Of a stretch of 64,000 nucleotides of DNA, positions 4,575 to 40,418 are shown in pieces (the stretch's first letter is position 1; the number at the start of each line of letters is the position of its first letter). Source of the DNA: Epithemia pelagica (taxonomy: Eukaryota > Protista > Bacillariophyta); assembly GCA_946965045.2 (NCBI GenBank), contig OX337232.1:2046001-2110000 (forward strand), in the 5' to 3' direction. Made by a program: the position numbers and the translations under genes. The notes below the pieces were generated by a model, which saw nothing but the letters and a program-made list of their open reading frames with translations, did no database searches and was not told the origin of the DNA.

Positions 4575-7500
4575 ATGAACCAAGCCAAAGTAAACGCAAC
4601 AAGTGGCAGAAGTGATGACGAAATAAGCGAAGCCTCGTCAATTCCAGTAAAAAGCGACGATTCCAATGATGAAGATTACTCTGATGCCGCGAAATCTAAT
4701 ATTGAAGATGAAATCAGTGATGGCGACAACAGCAGTTTCGATATGAACGAACTTACCCTGGCGTCTGCATCAAAACTCAATCCGACAGGTGCACAACAGA
4801 AACGAACACGGAGCAGTACCACTAGTGCCAGAGCTTCTGCTGCTCGGTCCAGTAAAAGCAACGCACGAGAACAGGGAAGGGAAAAAACGCCGTCACGGCA
4901 GCGGAGAATCAGCGCAAAGAAGAACAATGGACAAGCGCCATCGAAACAGCCTGCCGCGGCCACTCGACGCTCACGTCGTCGAGCGACACAGCGAACGTTG
5001 TCCAACAAAGAGTCGGATAGTAGCCATCACGAAACGTTGGGCGAAGAGTTTGATGACGAATCTGATGCAGACGAGAAAAGTCACGTTAACAACGAAAAGG
5101 ACAAGAAGGTGAAACCAAACAAACGGCGCACTATACTTTTAGATTCAGACGAAGAGTTGTCGGAAGACAATAACAGCAACCAGGAAGTCGAAACTCCTGT
5201 ATTGAAACTCAGTCGCCCAGCAACGAGAAGCCGTTCACAAAAGAGAAGTCGTCCTGAAAGTGTCGCAAGACCAACTGCAAGTAAACAAAGAATGAAGCGC
5301 AAGGGCGGTAGGACCAATAACTCATCACGGCTTGTGGATACGGAGGATGACGATAGCAGCATCGATGATACGAATTGGGCTATCACTCCAGAGCACACTC
5401 CAGTAACGATAAGAAAACAACGAAGTTCTGCTCGAAAAGCGAAAATATCCTTGTCGAGACATGCTAGGCTGGACAATGAAAACAGTGAAGATGAAGAAGA
5501 GGATACAGCAGCTGATGGATCCGAAACACCTCCGCGAAAACCCAGAGTCACCCGTGGAGAAAAAACAAGAAAATTCGCGGATGATGAAGATTATCATGAG
5601 GAGGATGACGATGAGGAGGCTGAATCGGAAATCGAGGTGGAGTCGGAAGAAGACAGTGACAACCCAAAGATACGGAAACGCAACAAGAGGAGATCAGTAA
5701 ATATAGACCAAGAGCAAATCGGCACAGTGAACGATGATTCAAGTCGAGATGAAGAGACGACTGGAAAACATCAGCAGTTTTCTTCTCCTGGTTTACATGA
5801 GATATCGCCGTCGCAAAAAGATGTCTTTGTTGACAGCGATAGTTACAGTCAAGACGACAATGCTCACCCACTGGATAGCCCGGTGCCATCTCCACGGGGA
5901 AAAGTTATGGAGTGCCCAAGCACACACGACGAGATCACAGCAGAGAAACTCCCCAAACGCCATGTGTGTTTCATCACAAACGATGGATCTCGACATTGTT
6001 TTGCGTTGTCTACGCTACACCGAATCGCGACTTCGTCAGCTTTAACCCAGTATCGCACAGATGTTGGTGGTAATCTGAAAAAGACATTTCTTCAGCCCCC
6101 TCATTTCCGATCTGCAATGTCTGAAGACTTGCTGGATCAGATTGCATCCCGTTTTGGACGTCAAGCTTTGGAAATTAGTTCTTCATTCTATGGTGGTAAT
6201 CTGCACCGAATGGAAAGAATGAACGAAGAGGACGTTTCCGTTGACGAGCAATCCAGAGATGGCCATTCAATGTCCAATGATCGAAGCTCTCTTAGGAATG
6301 CAATAGCAGACAACGAAGACTTTCTTCGACAGGTGCATCAGTACATGACAGCCCAGATGGGATCCCATGATTTATATGCATGTCCTGTATGCTTCTCAGT
6401 GGCACAGTTTCGATTTCGTCGAAAATCGTTTTTTGGAGCGCGTTGCAAGGAACAAGAAAATGGCGAGTCAAGTAATGATGAAGACCTCTATCTAGCAGAA
6501 GAGAGGCAGGATCCCATGGCTGTTCTCCAGTCACTGGACAAATCGTTTTCCCGGGAGTTTGAGATTGCTTCCACATTCTGTAGAAGCAAGGTGTCCGACA
6601 TAAAGGCGCATCTGCGGGACTACCATGATCTCGATACAAGAAACATTGACGGGAACAGTCTGTATTCTGCCTTCAAGATTCGAGCTCAAGATGGGTAAGG
6701 AACGATATGGCTCATGCACTGCGCAATAATAGCGCCACTAACGTTTTCTTTTTCACTCTTGCTTGGTTCAGTCTATTACAAAGGTACCTGAAGAAGCAGC
6801 GGCATTATGGGCGAGGTCAAGGTGCCATGCAAAGATATTGGTTGAGAGGCAACAATTTCTACTTTGTTCACTTGTTAAGTCTTGTTCAGAAAGCTCAACT
6901 GATGGCCATGGTAAATGAGACGGGAGAGCAGGATGAGGAGGTGGGAGCAGATGTTCGAGAAGAGGCACAGCAGTACTGGTCTGCCCCGATTGAATACTTT
7001 AGCTCGTGTCAGAGAATAAAAGATGCGCTATGGGATCGAATTGCAAGTCCATTTCGTAAAACTGATGCTCTGAGAGAAATGAAAGAGTGGATCGCTGACG
7101 AAAACGAAGATGATGGTGACGACGCAATTGTGTCTCATCGATCACTGTACATGGATTCCATCCGCAAGGATGAGGCTCGGGAGGCTGAAGCCAACCAAGA
7201 ACTGGTGGAGCGACTGAGAGTAGAGGCGGAAGGAATGGATGATGAAGAATCGGTTGTCGTGGAAGAAGAGGAAGAATCCGATGTCGTTCTTTCGGAGGAT
7301 AGTGGTTCGCTAGAAGGTGATGAAGAGGAGAACGAAAGCGATGATATGGATGAATGGCAGCAAAATCTTTTGAATAAGCGACGTGCTCGTAGTCCCGAAG
7401 ATGAAAAGAAGTCGCGAAGAGGCAACCCTCGAACAAGAGGTTCAGATGTCCCCCGACGTAGATTGAGTCTGTCAAAACAGAAGCAAGACGATTCCGACGA

Positions 7501-28098: not shown

Positions 28099-29052
28099 TT
28101 TTCCTTTCTAAGTACCGAAAAGTATCCTTGTGCTCTTCCCTTTGAGAACTAGCTTGAAACAGAGTCGCTTGAATGGAATTTGAGCGAGCTCGTTTGCCTT
28201 CACTTTGTTCTGCGAGGAGCGATGGGTATGGACGAGAAGTGGAGAACTGCTGTGCATTGTGCATGTCGTCCCAAAGACACACCATCCAAAAAATCCAAAC
28301 GGTCCAGCCCCCACGATCTTTTCGCCCCTTGACCCTTGACACTCCCTATCGACTGGATTCAACTGAGTATACTCACGCACCCTCATTTTTCTTTCCACGT
28401 CTAATATCCTCATAAAGCGAAGAATTCATCATGGCTATGATACTATGAAAGTCAATTGAACTAACTTACTGTCGTCTGTCTTAAGTGGAGTCCAACATCG
28501 CGCATCTTGAGTCTTAAAAAAAGATCGATGCAGGGCATGGGGGAAAATGGGGGATTGATTCCCATCCAGTCGCAGAAGGTTGCTTGAAGGTGATCTGAAT
28601 TCCTCAGTGACGTTGCCCCCAAAGCAAGACACAGGTGGAGTGTGAATGACTGACGTCAATGTCATCGATTTTGTATTGGCCAATGAAGATCGAGTGGTGT
28701 GTCGTAGTGAATGTCGCGCCTTCTTTCCATTCGTTCTCGGCTCGCGAATCACGAATTCACGACATGCTCAATGTCCTAACCCTAGCCCTAATCGGATATT
28801 AGTTGGGCCTCTTCTAGGACATGAATTTTTTGAAGATTCCCAATGTCGTATGTGACATCTAATATACTCGTAATAGTCGCAATAATATTATGAGTACGAG
28901 TACACTACCAGATCCCAGATCATTCCAAAGAACGACGATTCTGATCCGAAATCGGTACTCAATATCATACAGTCACCCGTAGAATTATACGTGTATGGTA
29001 CTCGTATTCCAGCATGAAGTTATTCCAACAAGCTTCCATGAAGGACAATACT

Positions 29053-29768
29053 GGAACACTCGGAACTTTGTAGTTGGGGACACATAGCCTCGATTGCTAG
29101 GAGACACTTCTTGTCCTCTAGCTGGCGACGCTCTAGTCTCGATTGTCTTGTAGGCTTTAGTGGGTAGTCCTGTAGGGTAGAAAAGGGCAATACATCTGGA
29201 CACGAGTACATATTTGGACAACATCTCCTCAACGGAGAATTTTTAGTCTTGTAGTGGACAGCGTGACATAATTGATTTAACATTTTCAATCCCGTATGTG
29301 CCCAGACAAAATAATATCCCTAAGTAGCGATTCCTGCGGTCCGTTGAAGAAAAGAATGTACTGGAAGTAAATACACTACCATAGAGCACCGAGATCCCGG
29401 AGAGCCGGGGGATGTCCGTTCCTGTTAATATCGCCTACGGGAATCACAAACCAATCAGCGATCGAACTGGACAACTGGACAACTGGACAAATCGAACTGG
29501 ACAACTGGACAACCGGACAACGAACTGGACAACTGGACAACTGGACAACTGGACAACTGGACAACTGGACAACTGGACAACTGGACAACTGGACAACTGG
29601 ACAACTGGACAACTGGACAACTGGACAACTGGACAACTGGACAACTGGACAACTGGACAACTGGATAAACGATGCAACAATACAAGGACACAACAAACAA
29701 GCCAACGAACGAACTAACAATCAAGGACGCAACAAACAAATAACCCAACAATCAACCAGGATTTTACT
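29053..29768 (+). repeat. Left long imperfect terminal inverted arm
   Basis: Colinear blocks match the reverse complement of 39495..40145 (CTCAACGGAGAA, TCCCGTATGTG, GAGCCGGGGGATGTC, CAATCAGCGATCGAACTGGACAA, CAACAATCAACCA). Confidence 0.85.
29467..29660 (+). repeat. (CTGGACAA)n octamer array, 3+3+17 units
   Basis: Blocks separated by ATCGAA and CGAA; the last run is 17 perfect units at 29525..29660. Confidence 0.95.
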
Positions 29769-29826
29769 ATGGAGAATTAGTTCTACCTATGGGTTTTGGT
29801 GATCAGGTACGAGTGGCAGGTACGAG

Positions 29827-30240
29827 TCAGCCGGAGGAAGACATCTGATCAGAGTCGAACACAACAGGGCGAAACCAAGCCTTCGAGCCCTTGTTTCGCT
29901 GTTTGTCGATGGCACGCTGAAGTCGGAGCTTGAAGAGGGCGGTCATCTGGTCGGGGCTCTGAAGCCCACACTGAGCGAACTGCTTGACAAGGTGGTTCAG
30001 CTTTTTTTCAAGGTCAAGGTGCTGTTGCAAGATGGCTTCTTCAATGCATCGGGGAGGCTTGATCGTGCTCTCAAGAGCCACACTCTCCTTGGAAACAAGG
30101 GTATATTTGACGGCACCCTCGCCCATGTCGATAATGACGGGAAGCATGCATTTGGTTGCTGAGCGTTGTGTGTTCAGCCAACCTTTACTTCCGACAAACG
30201 TGCCGCCAATGAAGCGGATAGGTTCGCCTCGACCGTCCAT
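29827..30240 (-). CDS. Accessory ORF-A, 137 aa, N-terminal KOW-like motif
   Basis: ATG-initiated intact ORF. GEPIRFIGGTFVGSKGWL fits the KOW pattern; helical C-terminal half. Confidence 0.65.
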   Translation of the reverse strand: MDGRGEPIRFIGGTFVGSKGWLNTQRSATKCMLPVIIDMGEGAVKYTLVSKESVALESTIKPPRCIEEAILQQHLDLEKKLNHLVKQFAQCGLQSPDQMTALFKLRLQRAIDKQRNKGSKAWFRPVVFDSDQMSSSG

Positions 30241-30284
30241 GATTCAACAATCAACCAATTGCCTGAGTGGAACAACAAGTAAAG

Positions 30285-30386
30285 ACGCAACAATCAAAGC
30301 AAGAAAGAGGGTCCGAGAAGAGTGGAAAGATTTGAACGCAACAATCAAAGCAAGAAAGAGGGTCCGAGAAGAGTAGAAAGATTTGA
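30285..30386. repeat. 51-bp direct tandem duplication in the divergent ORF-A/transposase intergenic region
   Basis: acgcaacaatcaaagcaagaaagagggtccgagaagagt(g/a)gaaagatttga at 30285 and 30336. Confidence 0.9.
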
Positions 30387-30759
30387 GACAAAGAGTCTCG
30401 CTGTTCATTCGGCCTGCGTCCAGTCGAAGGGTGCCCCGCGGGAAGTGACATCCCCAACAACGTAGATTTAAGTCTCCTATTAGTCACAACTTCTATGGAT
30501 TCAAATGCTTTAGTATGTGCTCGCTCTTCATCTACTTTATTGGTTCACTTTCTACTTTACAGGCTCGCCTTTTCATCTACTTGCCTCTCCTGTCTTTTGT
30601 ACTCGTAGGATCATAAGCTTTGCCGAACACGAAAATGAGACTCTTGCTTCCTGATGATATGATGCAACATGGCATCAAGCTTTTGGGCTTTTCATATGAT
30701 TCTGTCATGAAGATGTCCCCCGCAAAGCAGGAGAAGGTCTTTCGCTCACACTATGGTTC

Positions 30760-31523
30760 TGTTAGGATTCTCACCTTTAACTAGGTGATGGTGGAATCTA
30801 CAACACATCGACTGATGCTAGTATTTTATGGCATCCGATGACATTTGTGTTAAAGTGAGAAAAGAATGACGGCATGCTCGCGGACCTATAATTTTGGCCA
30901 AGGCATGCTCGCAATGCACGCGCTATCGGCGACCGCTCGGATATTGACTATGGCCCATCAAGTGCGCGCCCAGTATTCTCAAGCGCGCGCAATCACGATC
31001 CGAGTGAGCACCTCCACGACTTACCTCAACGACCTAAGTAATCAAAGCACGAATCACGATCACGCGAGACCATATTTCCATTCCCACAATTCCAAGAATG
31101 CAATCAACAACGCGCCAAGAAAACTACCTATATCACAACAAAGCAAGAGCTGTTGGCATTGGTATATGATATACAACTGCATATACTTTCAATACAACAA
31201 TGCAGGTCTACTCCAACCATTTGAGGACCTATCACACCAGATCCATGGCCGTATACAGGAGCCAGGACCTCGACCTTCATCAAACATCTTAGTTAGTAAT
31301 CATCTCACAATCATTAATATCACCATTTTAACACTCATCTTAAGACTTACCTCTTATCAGTGGACCGACTGCCCCCACCCACGGCGGACTTCGACTTGCA
31401 ACTCTTCTCTGACCCGTGGAGGATTGTTGTATCGGTTGGTGATCGATTGTTGGCTCAGCGAGCCTTTTACCCAACTACCTATTACCCTTCTGAATTCTCA
31501 ATGAGAGTTCTGCTAGATTAACA
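30760..31523 (+). repeat. 5' LTR (764 bp, TGTTA...TAACA)
   Basis: Matches 35388..36143; 5-bp terminal inverted repeat. Confidence 0.93.
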
Positions 31524-32019
31524 GTCTCATCGCTCATTGCCCTGCAGTCGCATTGGAGATCATACTTACCCATCTACATTGCGTACAGATTGAGCTACAC
31601 CAACAAACAAGAGTTAGAGGACAAAGCTACCCAACCCAACAACAGGGCCAGCCTGGCTAAGGCTAGGGTCATCAACCCTCTCCTATTCCAGGACCTCAAG
31701 CTGGACCAGGACTTTGTGCAACTACCTTCCCAATACTCACCTGACCAGTACTTTGCTGAGGACTACGAGCAAGACGAGGAAGCTACCATCATTCCTGACT
31801 CCCCGGTTCAACTCGATCACCGCAACGAGTCCGGAAGTGACCAAGGATAAGTATCTTTAAGTAGTTTCCACAACAAACCAGAGACAAAACCGAGTTCCGC
31901 ACATCCGGGTTCCCAGCACAACACACATCCGGGTACTGACATACGTGGCACACACGTGGTACATCCGGGTTCAGATCACACCACACATTAAATAAACAAC
32001 GAACCAACCATATACTACC

Positions 32020-35000
32020 ATGGATCCAACATACCCCAAGACACCTTCTCTTCCTTCTGACGACTCAGTACCGCCTGACATATCAGATACACAAGTGTTC
32101 AATCATATCACCCAGCATCTATTTGAATGTGATGAAGAACGAGCTCAAGCCCTTCATCAATGGATAAAACATAGTGGTTTCGAACACATTCTGAATGTCA
32201 TCGACTATCTTGCAGTCAATCCAGAAAAGAATATCAAGGACCTTGGACAATACAAGTATGGGAACAAGACGATGGATCTGAAGACATTTACAAGGCATCA
32301 ACTGAAGATCCTAGCACATTGGTCACGAGAACAAACCTCAACCCTGCAGCAGTCTGATTTACCTCGCTCTACCTGGTTGAACCTCACCAAGGCCAATTAT
32401 GATCATTGGAGAATCAATGCAGACTTCACCAAGCTCCGTCTGAACCAAGGTTGCATTTCGTCATTTCGTTTAGCAAAAAGAGAGGTGCTACGTCTTAACA
32501 ACTACATCTCCAATCTTCGTCTCGATGATTCATGGCACGGCACAACCTATCAGTTTCTTCTCCACTTTCAACACCAATTCCATCTTCTCGACAATCTGGG
32601 ATCAATGTTTGATCACATTCCTGGCCACTCCACTAGGATGACCTTCCTGATGAAAGCCGTTGAAAAGGTACCTGATTTACGACAAGTCAACATCTTGTCT
32701 GGTGCAAAGACACTTTGTTATCAATCATATTTCCGTCTTCTCCTTGATGCGGCATATGATCATGACCAAGTAACTCAAGCACCAAAGTCTAACCGACTTA
32801 AGCATACCAAGCAATGCGACTTTCAATATGATCAAGATTTTGATATCAAAGATCTATCACCCAAAGAAAAACACCGCATGATTAAGAGAACTAACGTGAA
32901 GACCAAGAAATCATCTTCGCTTCGTCCAAAGATCAGTCTTCCAAGAGATCTGTGGAGTAAACTCAACGACAATAGTCGTCAAGTAATCATTGCGTACAAC
33001 AAGTCTACCCAGAATCCGTCATCAACAACTGCATGCATGGAACAGACGCATACTCTTGACATTGATCCGGAACCTGATCCCGACCCTGGTCGTGCATGGA
33101 TTGACGACATGATTCAAGATGATTCCCAAGACCATCAAGATAATTTCTTTGATCTGATTACCTGGTTGGTTCCACAAGTTGTGACCAATATTGATGTCAA
33201 TCATCCAACATCTGATCTTGCTAATTTGGTGTCCAATATCAAGGCAACATCCATCCCTAATGATTGTCTCGAGAACAACAACTGTAAACAGAAAGTTGAG
33301 ATATCTCGACATCTGCTCTCTCGCATGTCTATTTTCTCCGGTGACAATCAATTGACTGGCTATAATCATTGGTATCTTGATCCCATGCAAGATACGGCAC
33401 CTTCTTCAAGGACTGTTGAAAATGATGGCAACAATCCGCATGATGCTTTTGGGAAGTATACCAATCGTGTTGTCTGTAACCTCAACCTTCTCTTGGATTT
33501 ACCTTACGATCATGGACCTGATACGCCTTCCTTCTTCACACCCCTGCTTGGAGAATACTGTTCCAAACCATATCTCCAAGATCAGAACATGGCTGAGAAC
33601 CGTTATCAGACCGTTAAGAGGACAACATACGTCGTGACCCTATCGGGCCATATCCCTCTTGAGATCCTCAATGGTCGCCCACCCGGCATTACCCACCCTC
33701 TTTTCTTCCTTATCTCGGACAAGGCCCCCTACTTTACCGAATCATATGCCCTCTTCCACCGTCCCTACCGTCCCTACCCTCCCTCTTTTGTCACGACACT
33801 TGGCTACTGGCTTGTTTTTGCCCCTCCTATTGGTGATACTTTGTCTCTGGACACTCAAACCCTTTGTTACTCTGCCATTCTTCATGATGCACCCACGCCA
33901 CCCAGCAACCTTTGTGTGGATACCTCTTCAGGGGAGGAATCGCTTCCAAGTGAACCCAACGGCAAGCAAGCTGACATTGTTTTCATTTGTAGCAAAGGTG
34001 AAGATCCATCCACGCAAATTCCAACGATCAAACATGATGACACTATTGGACAACCTTTCCTTGTTTATGATCCAGAGGAAAATGGGGAGCAACGACAACC
34101 GTATAATGGGGAGCAACCACAACCGTGTCTTATAAGATGCGTCATTGATTTAGAACAAGATGCTCTCAAGCAAGAAGACTGTATCAAGTACACTTTCTGC
34201 AAATCCATTTCCGACATTGACAAGATAATTTCATACCGTCAACATATGGAATACATCAAACAGGACAACCAAGCACAGGAAACTGAAGATGACGTTTTCC
34301 AGTTCAGAGACGTTGTTGCAGATCAAGAACCGTCAAGTATTAGCAACAATCCTGACTACAAAAGAAGTCACTGTAATATACTTGTTGATTGGGAGACTGG
34401 GGAGATGATCTATGAGCCTCCGTCACTCATGGTAAATGATGCCTATGCCAAGAAACATGATCTATTAAATGAACTTGGATGGAAACATCTCAAGCGTTTT
34501 GTCAAGACCAGTAAATGCCTTGTTCAAGCTGCTAAACAGCAGTCAAGAATCAAGCAAGTCTGTCGTTCCATCAAGTACAAGTTTGGTTATCAAGTTTCAA
34601 TGACAAATGAAGAATTAGTTGTTTTGTTAGACAAGCAACATGGTAAAAGAAAGTGGCACAACACTACTGAAGTTGAGCTCTTTCAGGCTTCACAGATCCA
34701 ATCCCTCACAAAAGTCAAGGATTGCGTTCAAGCTCAGTTCAAGAGAAGGGAAATGATAAATTCATCACCAGAAGAGTATCACAAGAACAAGATTCGAATC
34801 CATCTTGTAAAACATGATGATAGTCGCCCAGCACTTCTCATCACAGACGAGGCTTTTACCAAAGAACCGGTTGAGGCAATCTTTTTGTGTACTACTTCCA
34901 TTCACAACTTCCATACAACCACCTGTCTTGGGATTCTCAATGATATGGATGTATGGGGAGCAAAAGTTGGAATTGCACACGACCCGGAAGCTTTATCTGG

Positions 35001-35412
35001 AGAGAAGATCTTGATAGTTGCAAGACAAGAACTCAAGGAATCAGGTCACATCTTGATTACGCACAAGGCCTCAAAGGGATTGAAATCTTCAGGAGCAGGT
35101 CGGCGTGACTGTTTCTTTGACATCCCAATTGATATGGATTTGTCACCAACTAAGGCAGATCCCAATGTTTGGATGAAGAAGGCACCTGGGGAGCATAGCT
35201 CAAAGGGCATCGACAAGACCTACCAACTCAAGAATGATGACTATGAGAACATCCAGGAGACATTCTCAACAAACATTGGAAATTCTCGAAAGTATGGACC
35301 ATGTTCAAGATCATATTCTTCTGGGGAGGAAACGTTCAGAAGCATGACAAGGAAAATAACAATCCTCACTCGACGAATTGTGGGGAGTGTTAGGATTCTC
35401 ACCTTTAACTAG
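32020..35412 (+). CDS. Deleted/degenerate gag-pol, open for 1130 codons
   Basis: Gag-like LDDSWHGTTYQFLLHF; integrase tail SKPYLQDQNMAENRYQTVKR; WETGE...YAKKHDLLNE-x-GWK; RT remnants WGAKVGIAH, GLKSSG, PTKADPNVWM. No protease motif, HHCC, YxDD or RNase H recognisable. Confidence 0.8.
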   Translation: MDPTYPKTPSLPSDDSVPPDISDTQVFNHITQHLFECDEERAQALHQWIKHSGFEHILNVIDYLAVNPEKNIKDLGQYKYGNKTMDLKTFTRHQLKILAHWSREQTSTLQQSDLPRSTWLNLTKANYDHWRINADFTKLRLNQGCISSFRLAKREVLRLNNYISNLRLDDSWHGTTYQFLLHFQHQFHLLDNLGSMFDHIPGHSTRMTFLMKAVEKVPDLRQVNILSGAKTLCYQSYFRLLLDAAYDHDQVTQAPKSNRLKHTKQCDFQYDQDFDIKDLSPKEKHRMIKRTNVKTKKSSSLRPKISLPRDLWSKLNDNSRQVIIAYNKSTQNPSSTTACMEQTHTLDIDPEPDPDPGRAWIDDMIQDDSQDHQDNFFDLITWLVPQVVTNIDVNHPTSDLANLVSNIKATSIPNDCLENNNCKQKVEISRHLLSRMSIFSGDNQLTGYNHWYLDPMQDTAPSSRTVENDGNNPHDAFGKYTNRVVCNLNLLLDLPYDHGPDTPSFFTPLLGEYCSKPYLQDQNMAENRYQTVKRTTYVVTLSGHIPLEILNGRPPGITHPLFFLISDKAPYFTESYALFHRPYRPYPPSFVTTLGYWLVFAPPIGDTLSLDTQTLCYSAILHDAPTPPSNLCVDTSSGEESLPSEPNGKQADIVFICSKGEDPSTQIPTIKHDDTIGQPFLVYDPEENGEQRQPYNGEQPQPCLIRCVIDLEQDALKQEDCIKYTFCKSISDIDKIISYRQHMEYIKQDNQAQETEDDVFQFRDVVADQEPSSISNNPDYKRSHCNILVDWETGEMIYEPPSLMVNDAYAKKHDLLNELGWKHLKRFVKTSKCLVQAAKQQSRIKQVCRSIKYKFGYQVSMTNEELVVLLDKQHGKRKWHNTTEVELFQASQIQSLTKVKDCVQAQFKRREMINSSPEEYHKNKIRIHLVKHDDSRPALLITDEAFTKEPVEAIFLCTTSIHNFHTTTCLGILNDMDVWGAKVGIAHDPEALSGEKILIVARQELKESGHILITHKASKGLKSSGAGRRDCFFDIPIDMDLSPTKADPNVWMKKAPGEHSSKGIDKTYQLKNDDYENIQETFSTNIGNSRKYGPCSRSYSSGEETFRSMTRKITILTRRIVGSVRILTFN

Positions 35413-36143
35413 GTGATGGTGGAATCTACAACACATCGACTGATGCTAGTATTTTATGGCATCCGATGACATTTGTGTTAAAGTGAGAAAAGAATGACGG
35501 CATGCTCGCGGACCTATAATTTTGGCCAAGGCATGCTCGCAATGCACGCGCTATCGGCGACCGCTCGGATATTGACTATGGCCCATCACGTGCGCGCCCA
35601 GTATTCTCAAGCGCGCGCAATCACGATCCGAGTGAGCACCTCCACGACTTACCTCAACGACCTAAGTAATCAAAGCACGAATCACGATCACGCGAGACCA
35701 TATTTCCATTCCCACAATTCCAAGAATGCAATCAACAACGCGCCAAGAAAACTACCTATATCACAACAAAGCAAGAGCTGTTGGCATTGGTATATGATAT
35801 ACAACTGCATATACTTTCAATACAACAATGCAGGTCTACTCCAACCATTTGAGGACCTATCACACCAGATCCATGGCCGTATACAGGAGCCAGGACCTCG
35901 ACCTTCATCAAACATCTTAGTTAGTAATCATCTCACAATCATTAATATCACCATTTTAACACTCATCTTAAGACTTACCTCTTATCAGTGGACCGACTGC
36001 CCCCACCCACGGCGGACTTTGACTTGCAACTCTTCTCTGACCCGTGGAGGATTGTTGTATCGGTTGGTGATCGATTGTCGGCTCAGCGAGCCTTTTACCC
36101 AACTACCTATTACCCTTCTGAATTCTCAATGAGAGTTCTGCTA
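35388..36143 (+). repeat. 3' LTR (756 bp, terminal 8 bp deleted)
   Basis: Ends ...GTTCTGCTA followed directly by TSD GGTTC; the 5' LTR has an extra GATTAACA. Confidence 0.93.
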
Positions 36144-37098
36144 GGTTCGTCGCCCCTGGTGGTTGCACATGTGTGGTATGATCTTACCACAACCGACATC
36201 GCAAGTTCCAAGCTCAACGACAGTGAGAAGACAGAGAAAGGATTGAAGAGGTTCTTTGTTGCGATGTATTTTCTGTTCACTTACCCAAAAAATGCGCATA
36301 TCATTGCAACCGTGTTTCACCAAAATGAGAAATATTCCCGGGGTGAGGCAGTGTGGCAGTGGGTCCGTAAGATCCAAGGCCTGAAAGCCAAAGTCATCAT
36401 TTGGCCTCAATCACATGACGACCCGAACCGTGAAGTGTATGTTGTTACAGTTGATGGGGTGGACATGAAGACATGGGAACCGATGCATGAAACCTTTCCG
36501 CATGACCGACAATTCTTTTCCAAGAAATTCGCGCATGGTGGGCTGAAGTACGAGTTGGCAGTGAGTGTATTTTGGGGTCGGCTTGTCTGGATCAATGGCC
36601 CGTACAAGGCAGGCTGTCATGACCTGACCATCTTTTGAAACGGGCTTAAGGATCGCTTGGCAGATGGCAAGATGGCGATCGCTGACCGAGGATACGTTTC
36701 CTCTAGGGAAGATGAGGTCCACAAATTGGCAACGCCCAGAGCCACCGACAGTACGGAACTAGCAAAGTTCAAGTCTCGTTGCCGATGCAGGCATGAGACA
36801 TTCAATGGAAGGATCAAGAACTTCCGCATTCTGTCTGACACATACCGCCACTCCCTGGACAACCATCAGGCAGCTTTTGAAGCGGTTTGTGTCCTTGTCC
36901 AGTATCAAATCATGAATGGTTCTACGTTGTTTAACATCTAGAGAGTAGGTCTAACATGGCAAAATAACCAATAACCAATAACAAACGATCCTAAAAATAG
37001 TTATCATCTTGATGCATATTATGACTACTTCTCTGTACCACGTGGCATATAACAGAAAAGGATTCGCTTTCTTCTTCTTCGTTACTCAGTACTAAAGC

Positions 37099-38538
37099 TC
37101 AAAGGGATGCAAAGAGAGAGTTGACATCAGTCACACCACCATCAGAGGATCCACCAACTGGGACAGACTTGCTGTCAGAGACCATCCAATAAACATAGAC
37201 AGAAAAAAATGAGGTGCGCCCACTCTGTTTTTTCATCGGCGCCGTCTTCCTCGTCATGTTGATGTTGTCCCCAGGGTGAATCACTGAGTTGTCTAACTCA
37301 ACGCCCTCAGGGAAAATCCCAAGCCAATTCTTGCTACTGCATGCCTTGTTGAGCTTGCTCTTCATGCATGTTGAATGCAGCCGGTTGCTGACATTCTTCG
37401 AGTTGTCTCCGGTGAACTCTGTGTCTTCAAAACGCGACAAAAACTGATCAACATCATCATCCATCGAATCACGCCACGGACCTTCAATCAAGATGGCACG
37501 TCTCTCCAAGCCAGGGAAACCAGTGGCAATCCTTGCGCTGTACTTGTCGATATCCAGTGGCTCGACTTTCATTCGGATGATGTAGACGGTGCGTTCGTGT
37601 TTGTGATACACAACGCCAGGCACTCGGAAGACCATCACCTCATGAGAATCGGGGTAGTCAAATGAGATGTTGACAATCTTCGGGTTTTGGATGGTGCCCA
37701 AAGGGAACTCGGTCATTTCGCCAGAGTTTCCGCTGCTGCTGTCGGTCGTGGACGACATGATGGGAACGGCTGTGATGGGAGCTGGGACTGAGGCTTGGTC
37801 AGGGAGGACGAAGGAAGGAGGTGCAAGTTGGATGCCTTGTGGCTCAGGAGATGGAGATTGAAAGCTGGAGAACCGCGGTGGAGTTGCAAAGGAGGGAAGG
37901 TCTCCTCCGAATGCAACGGCTCTCTTCGAAGTTGCACGCGGCGGCGTATGGAACCGTGCAGATGTTGCGCCGGTTGACTGGACCTTGCTGGGCGGGCGAT
38001 GTATTTTGATGTCTCCTGCGCCTGCGCCTTCGTCAAGCTTGTGCTTGCTTGCCTGGACGCGCGGTTCAGAGGCAACGGACAAGTTCGTAAATCCACCAAT
38101 CAACGCGAAATCGTCGATGTTTTGTTCCTCCTCCTCGGATGCCTCGTCGTCCACCGCAAGGTCTTCGAAATCGACGTCGTCAACGCTGCTCGTCGTGGTG
38201 CCGGAACTTGCTGGGCCACTATAAGCAGCGAACGCCTCTCTGTTGGTGCCAAAGTTGCTGAGGATCCGAGTGTTCCACTCAGCAAGGGTCCGCTCACTGG
38301 GGGTGATCTTGCACTCGTCCAGGAGCTTCTTGTACTTCTCAATGTCAAGCTTGGTAAGTGACGAACAGCGCTTTTGAAAGCGGCGGAAGATCTTCCCAGA
38401 GCCGTACTTGTCACTTGACGAGGCTCCTCCCACGATGTCCGAAAAGAAGACTTCGGCTCGAGGCTTGGATGGGATGCTCTCGATGTCTTGCAAGAGAGTT
38501 TTCACCTGCTGGTTCGATAAGAATGAGGGATTCGGCAT
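37099..38538 (-). CDS. Accessory ORF-B, about 480 aa (helical N-domain, S/P/T-rich linker, beta-rich C-domain)
   Basis: Intact long ORF (track 37099..38691; likely ATG at 38538, MPNPSFLSNQQ). Convergent with the transposase, divergent from ORF-C. Confidence 0.7.
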   Translation of the reverse strand: MPNPSFLSNQQVKTLLQDIESIPSKPRAEVFFSDIVGGASSSDKYGSGKIFRRFQKRCSSLTKLDIEKYKKLLDECKITPSERTLAEWNTRILSNFGTNREAFAAYSGPASSGTTTSSVDDVDFEDLAVDDEASEEEEQNIDDFALIGGFTNLSVASEPRVQASKHKLDEGAGAGDIKIHRPPSKVQSTGATSARFHTPPRATSKRAVAFGGDLPSFATPPRFSSFQSPSPEPQGIQLAPPSFVLPDQASVPAPITAVPIMSSTTDSSSGNSGEMTEFPLGTIQNPKIVNISFDYPDSHEVMVFRVPGVVYHKHERTVYIIRMKVEPLDIDKYSARIATGFPGLERRAILIEGPWRDSMDDDVDQFLSRFEDTEFTGDNSKNVSNRLHSTCMKSKLNKACSSKNWLGIFPEGVELDNSVIHPGDNINMTRKTAPMKKQSGRTSFFSVYVYWMVSDSKSVPVGGSSDGGVTDVNSLFASL

Positions 38539-38933
38539 TATGAGAGGTTGTGAGCCTTTCTTTGCAAAGCAACAAACTACTCGTAGACCTGTCAAAAGCA
38601 ACATTAGTCTTATTTTCATTCCTACGTATACGCAATCATAGGTACATCTTAGGCATTGGTACTGCGTTGCCGTGGAGCATTTTGGCGCCATCCTTTTTGG
38701 CGCCGTCCTTATTCATACCTCTACGCAATCATAGGTACATTTTGGCCGTTGATACGCATTGCTATCCATTCGTGCCGTGCGTTGCATGGCATACATTACA
38801 GCGAAGCGACTGTTCGCGGGAAGCAGCTTCCCGTCAAGGGTGGGTCTTGTTTGACGCTATTCTATCAATGAAAGAGCATTGACATGGCAATCAAACTGTT
38901 TCTACTATCATCTTATCGCTCATAACTTCTAAG

Positions 38934-39494
38934 ATGGCACCGATTGGAAAGGAAGGTTGGATTCCCTGGCGCAAGAGCGCAACTCGAGCTCTCATTGTTT
39001 CTGAGTTGGAAAGCGGTGGCATTCCACTCACGCATGCAATTGGAGTCACGGCCGAAGATGTTTGGAGCAAGTACAAGGATCATGAAACTGTTGTGTCCGA
39101 GAAAGTGGTCAAGGAGCAGTTTCTTCTCCGTCTCAGGGACCACCAGAAACAAGTAGCTATCAAGAAACAATGTTCCTCACGTGAGGAAATCGCCCTCCGT
39201 CACGACCTTGCCATGCATCCTCCTCTCTGTAGCAACGCCTTCGGCCGTCCATTCTGGAACGGCTCTGATGCACAGAATTTTCTGGAACAAGATGTCTTCA
39301 ACCGAGTTTATGAACGCATGCATGTTGACCTGCTCTACCTCAGCCGCCCTGAGTACCAGGAGTTTCCGATGCGTTTGTTCCGTCATCATCTCTACCAAGA
39401 GATCAAACGCCAGAAGTTTATCTGTTTCCTTGAAATGAAGCGGGCCCAGAAACTAGCCACCAAGCAAGCCAAAGATCAGACCCGTAGCTCTTAA
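38934..39494 (+). CDS. Accessory ORF-C, 186 aa, two tandem W-x-x-S helical repeats (possible Myb/SANT-like DNA-binding partner)
   Basis: WRKSATRALIVSEL...EQFLLRL and WNGSDAQNFLEQDV...EFPMRLFRHHL. The stop codon abuts the inner end of the right arm. Confidence 0.7.
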   Translation: MAPIGKEGWIPWRKSATRALIVSELESGGIPLTHAIGVTAEDVWSKYKDHETVVSEKVVKEQFLLRLRDHQKQVAIKKQCSSREEIALRHDLAMHPPLCSNAFGRPFWNGSDAQNFLEQDVFNRVYERMHVDLLYLSRPEYQEFPMRLFRHHLYQEIKRQKFICFLEMKRAQKLATKQAKDQTRSS

Positions 39495-40145
39495 AGTAAA
39501 TTGGTTGATTGTTGTGCCATTCCTCTAGTTTGTCTTCGTAGTCTTTTGTACAGTTGTTCGTAATCTTTGTCCAGTTGTCCAGTTGTCGAGTTGTCCAGTT
39601 GTCAAGTTGTCCAGTTGTCCAGTTGTCCAGTTGTCCAGTTGTCCAGTTGTCCAGTTGTCCAGTTCGTTGTCCAGTTGTCCAGTTGTCCAGTTCAATTTGT
39701 CCAGTTGTCCAGTTGTCCAGTTCGATCGCTGATTGTCAAGTTCAGTTTTGTGTTTCCCGCAGGTCATGTTAATACGAATCGACATCCCCCGGCTCCCCAA
39801 CTTGTCATATATTGTACTATTCTACAGTAGAATTTTTCTCAACGGATCGTATCTTCTGGAGTACTTAGCGATCAAATTTTCAAGTCCGCACATACGGGAT
39901 CAAAAGTATCGATCAGACCCTGTCACGCCCATCGCTACAGGACTAACATTTCTCCGTTGAGTTGGTCGTGTACAGAAAATTGCGATAAGTATCCATGTCC
40001 AGTTATATTGCCCCATTTGTCCCTTCCGGACAACGTCACGAACCGAACTAGACTAGAGAGCTCTAAGCCTGAATAGCTAGAGGACAAGAAGTGTCTCCTA
40101 GCAATCGAGTCTATGTGTCCCCAACGACATAATTCCGAGTGTTCC
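39495..40145 (-). repeat. Right long imperfect terminal inverted arm
   Basis: Its reverse complement matches 29053..29768. Confidence 0.85.
39567..39720 (-). repeat. (TTGTCCAG)n octamer array, 12+3+3 units, inverted relative to the left array
   Basis: Blocks separated by TTCG and TTCAAT; two variant units (TTGTCGAG, TTGTCAAG). Confidence 0.95.
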
Positions 40146-40418
40146 TGATCGATGATTCCTACAAAATATTCTACAGTGTATCGTGGAATTGTACGTACAT
40201 GGTAGAGATGGGGATTGCGTCAAACTGGCCCATGAACCATGAATGCGTCAAACTGGCCGATTTCCTCACAAATTGAGACCTCTCTCCGCTCTTCACTGAT
40301 GCATGTTCAACAGCTTATTCTTGCCCTGATTATCCTTAGTCAAGTTGTTTCCCAAGGACACTCGTTTCTGAAGGTAAATTTGCAGACGAAAGTACTATCA
40401 AGTCCCTTATCTCATAAC

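Follow-up and report, generated by a model that had tools for sequence, protein, structure and literature searches.

Does a transposase of Harbinger type that lies between long inverted arms, next to three open reading frames (ORFs) of no named family, form a single mobile system together with those ORFs? The question is raised by a locus of the diatom Epithemia pelagica, situated in a stretch of 64,000 nucleotides (hereafter the window; contig 5, positions 2046001-2110000), and was addressed by searching the entire 60.5-Mb assembly (23 contigs). An earlier interpretation of this DNA, made from its letters only and here called the sequence-only reading, proposed a multi-component transposition system. 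In our assessment, window positions 29054-40144 very probably constitute an autonomous-type cut-and-paste transposon of the PIF/Harbinger type (PHIS superfamily), belonging to a diatom lineage that duplicates CWG target sites, in which the transposase and three accessory genes (ORF-A, ORF-B and ORF-C) act as one functional unit. The chemistry of its PHIS-type transposase is, judging from the match of the CWG target to that of the NuwaI group, of a known kind. What sets it apart from that group are the three unnamed accessory genes and, in its sub-clade, the long arms with their arrays.

Boundaries of the element and target-site duplication

The extent of the element was established by comparison of its copies. 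Searching the genome with the left arm revealed two further full copies, one on contig 7 (with no insert) and one on contig 16. The three copies are 97-99% identical, as measured against the window copy, and have the same end bases; their homology ends abruptly at window positions 29051 and 40147, and together they delimit a single DNA transposon. The inverted repeat proper spans 29054-40144, and the trinucleotide CTG is found directly outside it on both sides (29051-29053 and 40145-40147). The extent given by the sequence-only reading, 29053-40145, was within 1-2 bases of these ends. After removal of a nested long terminal repeat (LTR) element, described below, the window copy measures 5,702 bp, compared to 5,686 bp for the uninterrupted contig-7 copy, in agreement with the unit of about 5.7 kb proposed earlier. 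Without the insert, its parts are arranged in the order arm, ORF-A (-)/transposase (+), ORF-B (-)/ORF-C (+), arm.

Termini were located for seven subfamilies at 20 loci, and 11 complete, independent insertions could be used for the assessment of target duplication. The same direct trinucleotide occurs on both sides in all 11 of them (CTG in five, CAG in five and CCG in one), such that CWG accounts for every insertion except the one with CCG. The trinucleotide also varies within subfamilies, with CAG, CTG and CGG in the L008 subfamily and CTG and CAG in the L011 subfamily. Since it is repeated in direct orientation, and not as reverse complements, and since it differs among members of a subfamily, it represents a duplication of the target rather than a part of the inverted repeat. 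On the comparison of insertion flanks, it is a 3-bp CWG (rarely CNG) target-site duplication. Immediately after the trinucleotide, the repeats begin with GAA or GGA. The exact ends and the duplication, which the earlier reading had proposed to define from multiple copies, are thus provided by the ends common to the three copies and by the 11 insertions.

Solo terminal fragments of the window subfamily were also observed, representing its left and right ends (L044:1994-2078, 85 bp, and L045:2051-2148, 98 bp; 99% identical). They are located on contigs 9 and 1, where they abut unrelated DNA; next to one of the two stands ATG rather than CWG.

The transposase

The transposase gene is encoded on the forward strand and is severed by the LTR insertion. 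Its 5' part, codons 1-41, is located at 30635-30759 (the segment 30635-30781 matches residues 1-49). The 3' part, at 36149-36941, carries the DDE_Tnp_4 core and contains an in-frame TGA (36636-36638) at the position of Arg205, a residue conserved without exception in the family. Removal by script of the insert, together with one copy of its GGTTC duplication, brought the flanks into a single reading frame in which this TGA is the sole break; the joined frame was only inspected, and the searches were performed with its two pieces and with an intact paralogue (L001:3543-4460). In the Pfam search the intact paralogue matched DDE_Tnp_4 (PF13359) with an E-value of 7.2e-12 and 45.7 bits, above the cut-off of 24.8, and the catalytic triad of D144, D221 and E258 is unchanged among 9 diverged transposases. 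On the basis of this domain match, the enzyme is a DDE_Tnp_4 transposase of the PIF/Harbinger type, and the element combines the core, the terminal inverted repeats and the duplication of 2-3 bp that characterize members of the PHIS superfamily.

Owing to the LTR insertion at codon 41-42 and the change of Arg205 to TGA, the window copy is unable to make its own transposase. The sequence-only reading, which regarded the transposase as dead, was therefore correct for this copy but not for the others, as an intact ORF of 305 residues is present in both the contig-7 and the contig-16 copies. Because the window copy retains both ends and intact ORF-A, ORF-B and ORF-C, its mobilisation in trans by these two copies is conceivable in principle.

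The interrupting element (30760-36143, forward strand) is foreign to the transposon. The insert is 5,384 bp long and is bounded by two LTRs of 756 bp (30760-31515 and 35388-36143) that differ by 3 mismatches; a 5-bp duplication, GGTTC, flanks it on both sides (30755-30759 and 36144-36148). The near-identical LTRs and this duplication bear out the nested LTR element noticed earlier, the removal of which restores the four-gene unit. Its single long ORF (1130 residues, 32020-35412) is still open, and a Pfam scan gave no match at E<=0.1, so that neither a reverse transcriptase nor an integrase domain was detected. The insert is a young LTR retroelement, considered non-autonomous or strongly diverged in view of the lack of a Pfam match in this ORF.

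The genome also contains other, more numerous DDE_Tnp_4 families, which share 31-38% identity, over partial length, with this transposase. In addition, a second DDE_Tnp_4 frame (27% identity; L011:7963-8715) was observed just past the right-hand end of the element on contig 8, indicating that Harbinger-type elements cluster there.

Co-occurrence of the four genes

The accessory ORFs of the window copy are all open, as the sequence-only reading had stated, and the contig-7 copy has all four ORFs open. Whether other copies keep the accessory ORFs together with the transposase and the arms had been chosen beforehand as the decisive question. Genome-wide protein searches with the transposase and with each ORF showed that the ORFs do accompany it: homologues of ORF-A, ORF-B and ORF-C occur alongside the transposase at about 40 loci, in two gene orders. 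Among the loci with a full-length-related transposase (approximately 37-100% identity), a homologue of ORF-A lies within 13 kb at 39 of 40, and a homologue of ORF-C at all 40. In the reverse direction, such a transposase was found beside 46 of 50 hits for ORF-C, 40 of 42 for ORF-A and 24 of 26 for ORF-B. The homologues of the three ORFs at these loci are 26-68% identical. ORF-B is the most diverged of the three, and a profile hidden Markov model recovered it in every subfamily examined, including those that had been missed by the single-sequence search.

The order ORF-A (-), transposase (+), ORF-B (-), ORF-C (+) characterizes the sub-clade of the window element, which is represented on contig 6, at three loci of contig 13 and on contigs 9, 17, 3, 8 and 5. 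The second sub-clade shows the order ORF-A (+), ORF-B (-), transposase (+), ORF-C (-) and contains 7-8 near-identical copies per subfamily. A third order, ORF-B (-), ORF-C (+), ORF-A (-), transposase (+), was identified on a metagenome contig of 4.6 kb (L032), in which the transposase is interrupted by stops. The search of metagenome contigs with the ORF-C profile yielded 17 loci, and the shorter contigs show ORF-B/ORF-C, ORF-A/ORF-C or transposase/ORF-C neighbours. The existence of three distinct orders implies that ORF-A, ORF-B, ORF-C and the transposase are each a unit of their own. The profile search of the genome with ORF-C detected no homologue next to the remaining DDE_Tnp_4 families, which outnumber this one, so that the set of genes is diagnostic of a single clade of transposases.

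Selection on the accessory ORFs had been named as a further point to be examined. Between subfamilies, synonymous sites are saturated, the non-synonymous divergence (dN) amounts to 0.25-0.97 and the frames are open, a pattern consistent with all four genes being under purifying selection.

The contig-16 copy (L002/L003, 891767-901048) contains an internal tandem duplication of 3,614 bp that comprises the transposase, ORF-B and the first 105 codons of ORF-C, so that the transposase and ORF-B genes are each present twice, and intact, in this copy. On contig 13, two decayed copies (L005 and L006, at about 2.826 and 3.004 Mb) have common flanks in inverted orientation, indicating that one insertion was duplicated by an inverted segmental duplication, with the two copies approximately 177 kb apart.

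Inverted arms and their arrays

The left arm, a long terminal inverted repeat (29054-29668, forward strand), starts with GAACACTCGGAA and contains 25.9 units of AACTGGAC at 29465-29665. The right arm (39535-40144, reverse strand) contains 20.2 units of TTGTCCAG at 39567-39722 (both arrays as determined by Tandem Repeats Finder, TRF), and this octamer array is the complement of the AACTGGAC array of the left arm. Pairing of 29053-29644 with 39546-40145 shows 76% identity. The inverted repeats with octamer arrays described in the sequence-only reading are thus present, but their length is about 600 bp by pairing, rather than the 650-700 bp given there.

Long arrayed arms recur in every subfamily that shares the gene order of the window element, with lengths of 590-750 bp and 77-98% identity between the two arms. 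Each arm bears, at its inner end, an array of roughly 12-26 units with a period of 8 bp (7-8 in the case of L007). The units are AACTGGAC in the window element, AAGCGGAC/AAGACGAC on contig 6, AAGACAAG on contig 13, CGGACAA in L007 and AATCCACA in L008, and a core of GACAA or CACAA is common to the array units of the sub-clade. Subfamilies with the second gene order have short inverted repeats, about 31 bp in L014, which bears an array of 9-10-bp units close to its right end. Since short subterminal arrays occur in the second-order subfamilies as well, the arrays near the ends are a general feature; it is the sub-clade of the window element that is distinguished by long inverted arms. In L016, arrays of an 11-bp unit, GTTTCGACTTT, were observed near both ends (10.7 and 16 copies, at 2621-2735 and 6857-7026), in direct and not inverted orientation.

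Sequence and predicted structure of the accessory proteins

ORF-A (29827-30240, reverse strand) codes for 137 residues, ORF-B (37099-38691, reverse strand) for 530 and ORF-C (38934-39494, forward strand) for 186. The divergent intergenic region between ORF-A and the transposase contains a tandem repeat of two 51-bp units (30285-30386), which is present in all three copies. Pfam searches gave no credible match, but low-complexity or chance hits at most, for the three proteins and for 10 ORF-C, 13 ORF-A and 50 ORF-B family members, and no nuclease or recombinase domain was recognisable in ORF-A, ORF-B or ORF-C in these scans. Profile searches of the PDB sequences with the three proteins returned nothing under E=0.04. 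In public data, ORF-C is represented by 65 clusters, and a full HMMER scan with ORF-B gave 1,027 cluster representatives (204 of them below 1e-30), all of which are unnamed for both proteins. No match was found in the viral contigs scanned with the ORF-C profile.

The predicted model of ORF-C, based on an alignment of 47 sequences, has a mean confidence (predicted local distance difference test, pLDDT) of 93.6 and is all-helical, with a pair of small three-helix domains, a long helix after each of these and a basic tail. The ORF-B model consists of a confident helical N-terminal domain (residues 56-155), a disordered linker (160-330) and a confident alpha/beta C-terminal domain (332-515) with a predicted beta-sandwich. 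Foldseek comparison with the PDB gave no match at E<=0.001 for either protein. In exhaustive structural alignments, ORF-C reached Z-scores of 4.5-5.4, its first unit resembling FF domains and its second unit homeodomain, SANT and Myb folds. For ORF-B, 39 of the top 40 rows were beta-sandwiches of the HSP20/alpha-crystallin or CS/p23 type (Z 5-7), and its helical domain scored approximately 4-4.7 with homeo-prospero, Reb1 and PHR2. All of these values are lower than the aligner's own reliability level of Z 8.

Several other candidate relationships were considered and did not find support. A relation between the N-terminal domain of ORF-B and the repeats of ORF-C was not retained, as hhalign aligned the LL.D.E motif common to both with a probability of 0.2%. 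A profile comparison of ORF-A with ORF-B found no relation. A KOW/SH3-like N-terminus of ORF-A, suggested by the motif G..I.F.GG.Y.G..GW, was unsupported, with no KOW match in 13 members, and a protein atlas offered nothing useful for ORF-A (score 0.75). For the C-terminal domain of ORF-B, the same type of atlas comparison gave a sub-threshold lead to the N-terminal domain of family-B DNA polymerases (0.83-0.88, approximately 104-125 shared features), which was not adopted.

Comparison with known transposons

The groups of the PHIS (PIF/Harbinger-ISL2EU-Spy) superfamily are distinguished by their target duplication, which is TWA in PIF/Harbinger and CWG in NuwaI (Han et al. 2015, PMC4482050). 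NuwaI elements, reported from 16 animal genomes only, contain two ORFs, one of which codes for a Myb/SANT protein, and their inverted repeats measure 12-61 bp and usually start with GGG (PMC4482050). Like NuwaI, the elements described here possess a Harbinger-type DDE transposase, a 3-bp CWG duplication and a G-rich repeat start (GGA or GAA in this case). Unlike NuwaI, they contain four conserved genes, show no Myb/SANT match in Pfam and inhabit a diatom, and their arms, which start with GAA or GGA instead of GGG, are about 600 bp long in the window family and 590-750 bp in its sister subfamilies; the NuwaI range of repeat length is reached by the second-order subfamily L014 (approximately 31 bp). 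The likeness to NuwaI is one of target duplication, transposase type and repeat start. Three diatom genomes were among those scanned by Han et al., and a term search of supplementary files hit on diatom names in the list of scanned genomes alone (PMC4482050). In Thalassiosira pseudonana, Harbinger-like elements have been mentioned without structural detail (PMC2806351).

About 93% of PIF/Harbinger inverted repeats are shorter than 60 bp (PMC4482050). With the classical PIF/Harbinger/Pong elements, the present family shares the DDE_Tnp_4 transposase and the 3-bp duplication. It differs from them in its targets (CTG, CAG and, once, CCG, as opposed to TWA), in its four ORFs, as opposed to a transposase with one Myb/SANT partner, and in its arms, as opposed to repeats that are mostly below 60 bp. 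Both Harbinger3_DR and Ping/Pong depend on a separately encoded partner protein.

Very long inverted arms with internal tandem arrays of short units are also a feature of Foldback/Galileo elements. The latter employ a transposase of a different superfamily and duplicate more than 3 bp of their target, unlike the DDE_Tnp_4 transposase and 3-bp duplication found here. The sequence-only reading spoke of foldback-type arms, a description that is apt for the long, arrayed arms but does not extend to kinship, since the resemblance is confined to the arms.

Eukaryotic DNA transposons in which an accessory gene co-evolves with the DDE transposase include MuDR (mudrB) and CACTA (TnpA/TnpD). Further precedents are ISL2EU with its YqaJ exonuclease (PMC4482050) and KolobokP with a His-Me endonuclease (PMC9587614). 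Each of these carries a single additional gene, in most cases with a domain that can be recognised, whereas the present elements have three, none of which contains a named domain. Our literature search found no paper on a multi-gene diatom Harbinger or on a Harbinger with three accessory genes; Repbase and Dfam were not compared.

Proposed mechanism and alternative explanations

The inference of a multi-component system in the sequence-only reading is supported in its testable core by the co-occurrence of the four genes; the roles of the accessory proteins are inferred. The predicted folds suggest that ORF-C, the N-terminal domain of ORF-B, or both, may stand in for the Myb/SANT partner that classical Harbingers possess. 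The helical accessory protein or proteins would bind the tandem arrays of about 20 units in each arm and would recruit or import the transposase, and the putative beta-sandwich of ORF-B could supply protein-protein contacts. In its most far-reaching form, the proposal would be an obligate multi-subunit machine, in which ORF-C and/or the ORF-B N-terminus coats the arrays, the ORF-B beta-sandwich either oligomerises or recruits a chaperone in order to pair the coated arms, and ORF-A regulates the complex. We consider this form possible but doubtful.

Several observations weigh against the interpretation as a four-gene transposon, or against its novelty. A Myb/SANT match was sought by Pfam among the 10 ORF-C, 13 ORF-A and 50 ORF-B family members and was not found. 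The structural matches of ORF-B and ORF-C, being below Z 8, are weak leads and not identifications, and binding of DNA at the arm arrays is purely inferred. The arms of the window subfamily are just 76% alike, which might reduce its activity. No empty site was found for the element, and the target duplication was deduced from flanks. Finally, the term "undescribed" refers to the literature, and elements of the same kind may already have been deposited in Repbase or Dfam.

Among the alternatives, the one that survives best views ORF-A, ORF-B and ORF-C as conserved cargo that acts outside the DNA chemistry, in anti-silencing, in the recruitment of chaperones through the HSP20/CS-like domain of ORF-B, or in the regulation of copy number. 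The predicted resemblance of the ORF-B beta-sandwich to co-chaperone CS/p23 and small heat-shock domains would be in keeping with such functions, as would the lack of a recognisable nuclease or recombinase domain in all three proteins. The gene set is, however, accompanied by subterminal arrays of short units, which point to a partner that binds DNA, like that of classical Harbingers, and the fold evidence is weak in either direction. We judge the cargo explanation to be unlikely.

A second alternative is an ordinary two-gene Harbinger or NuwaI element, in which a single accessory ORF supplies the Myb-like partner, the remaining two having arisen by chance, being in decay or having been captured as fragments of host genes. 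The described PHIS groups indeed have two ORFs (PMC4482050), the CWG duplication agrees with NuwaI, and the three-helix fold of ORF-C weakly resembles SANT, Myb and homeodomains. Nevertheless, all three ORFs are open at about 40 loci and in environmental contigs, in three orders and at 26-68% identity with saturated synonymous sites, and for ORF-B by itself the public data contain over 1000 cluster representatives. The two-gene explanation is largely refuted by these co-occurrence data and appears very improbable.

That the locus is a segmentally duplicated, immobile host gene cluster which happens to contain a transposase gene is hardly credible: the L005/L006 pair on contig 13, with its inverted common flanks, did arise by segmental duplication, but the flanks of the remaining copies are unrelated to each other, their ends are sharp and identical, they possess terminal inverted repeats, and a direct duplication of 3 bp matches on the two sides; moreover, several subfamilies comprise 4-8 near-identical dispersed copies, and truncated solo ends occur on contigs 9 and 1.

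Implications

Among eukaryotic transposases, those of Harbinger type are the textbook example of dependence on a partner encoded by another gene, and the working of this partnership is poorly understood. The four-gene transposon proposed here, in which three partners have been kept with the transposase through deep divergence and shuffling of gene order, and in many environmental sequences, would offer a natural system for the study of accessory-protein roles. It would also bring diatoms into the CWG-targeting branch of the superfamily, previously reported from animals, and it assigns a transposon-borne context to large unannotated protein families, of which ORF-B alone accounts for more than 1000 public clusters. 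For genome annotation, the four ORFs at each of about 40 loci should not be labelled as host genes. The intact copies with defined ends could serve as genetic tools for diatoms. If the obligate multi-subunit machine were to prove true, it would represent a class of accessory factors new to eukaryotic cut-and-paste transposons and widespread in diatoms and marine metagenomes.

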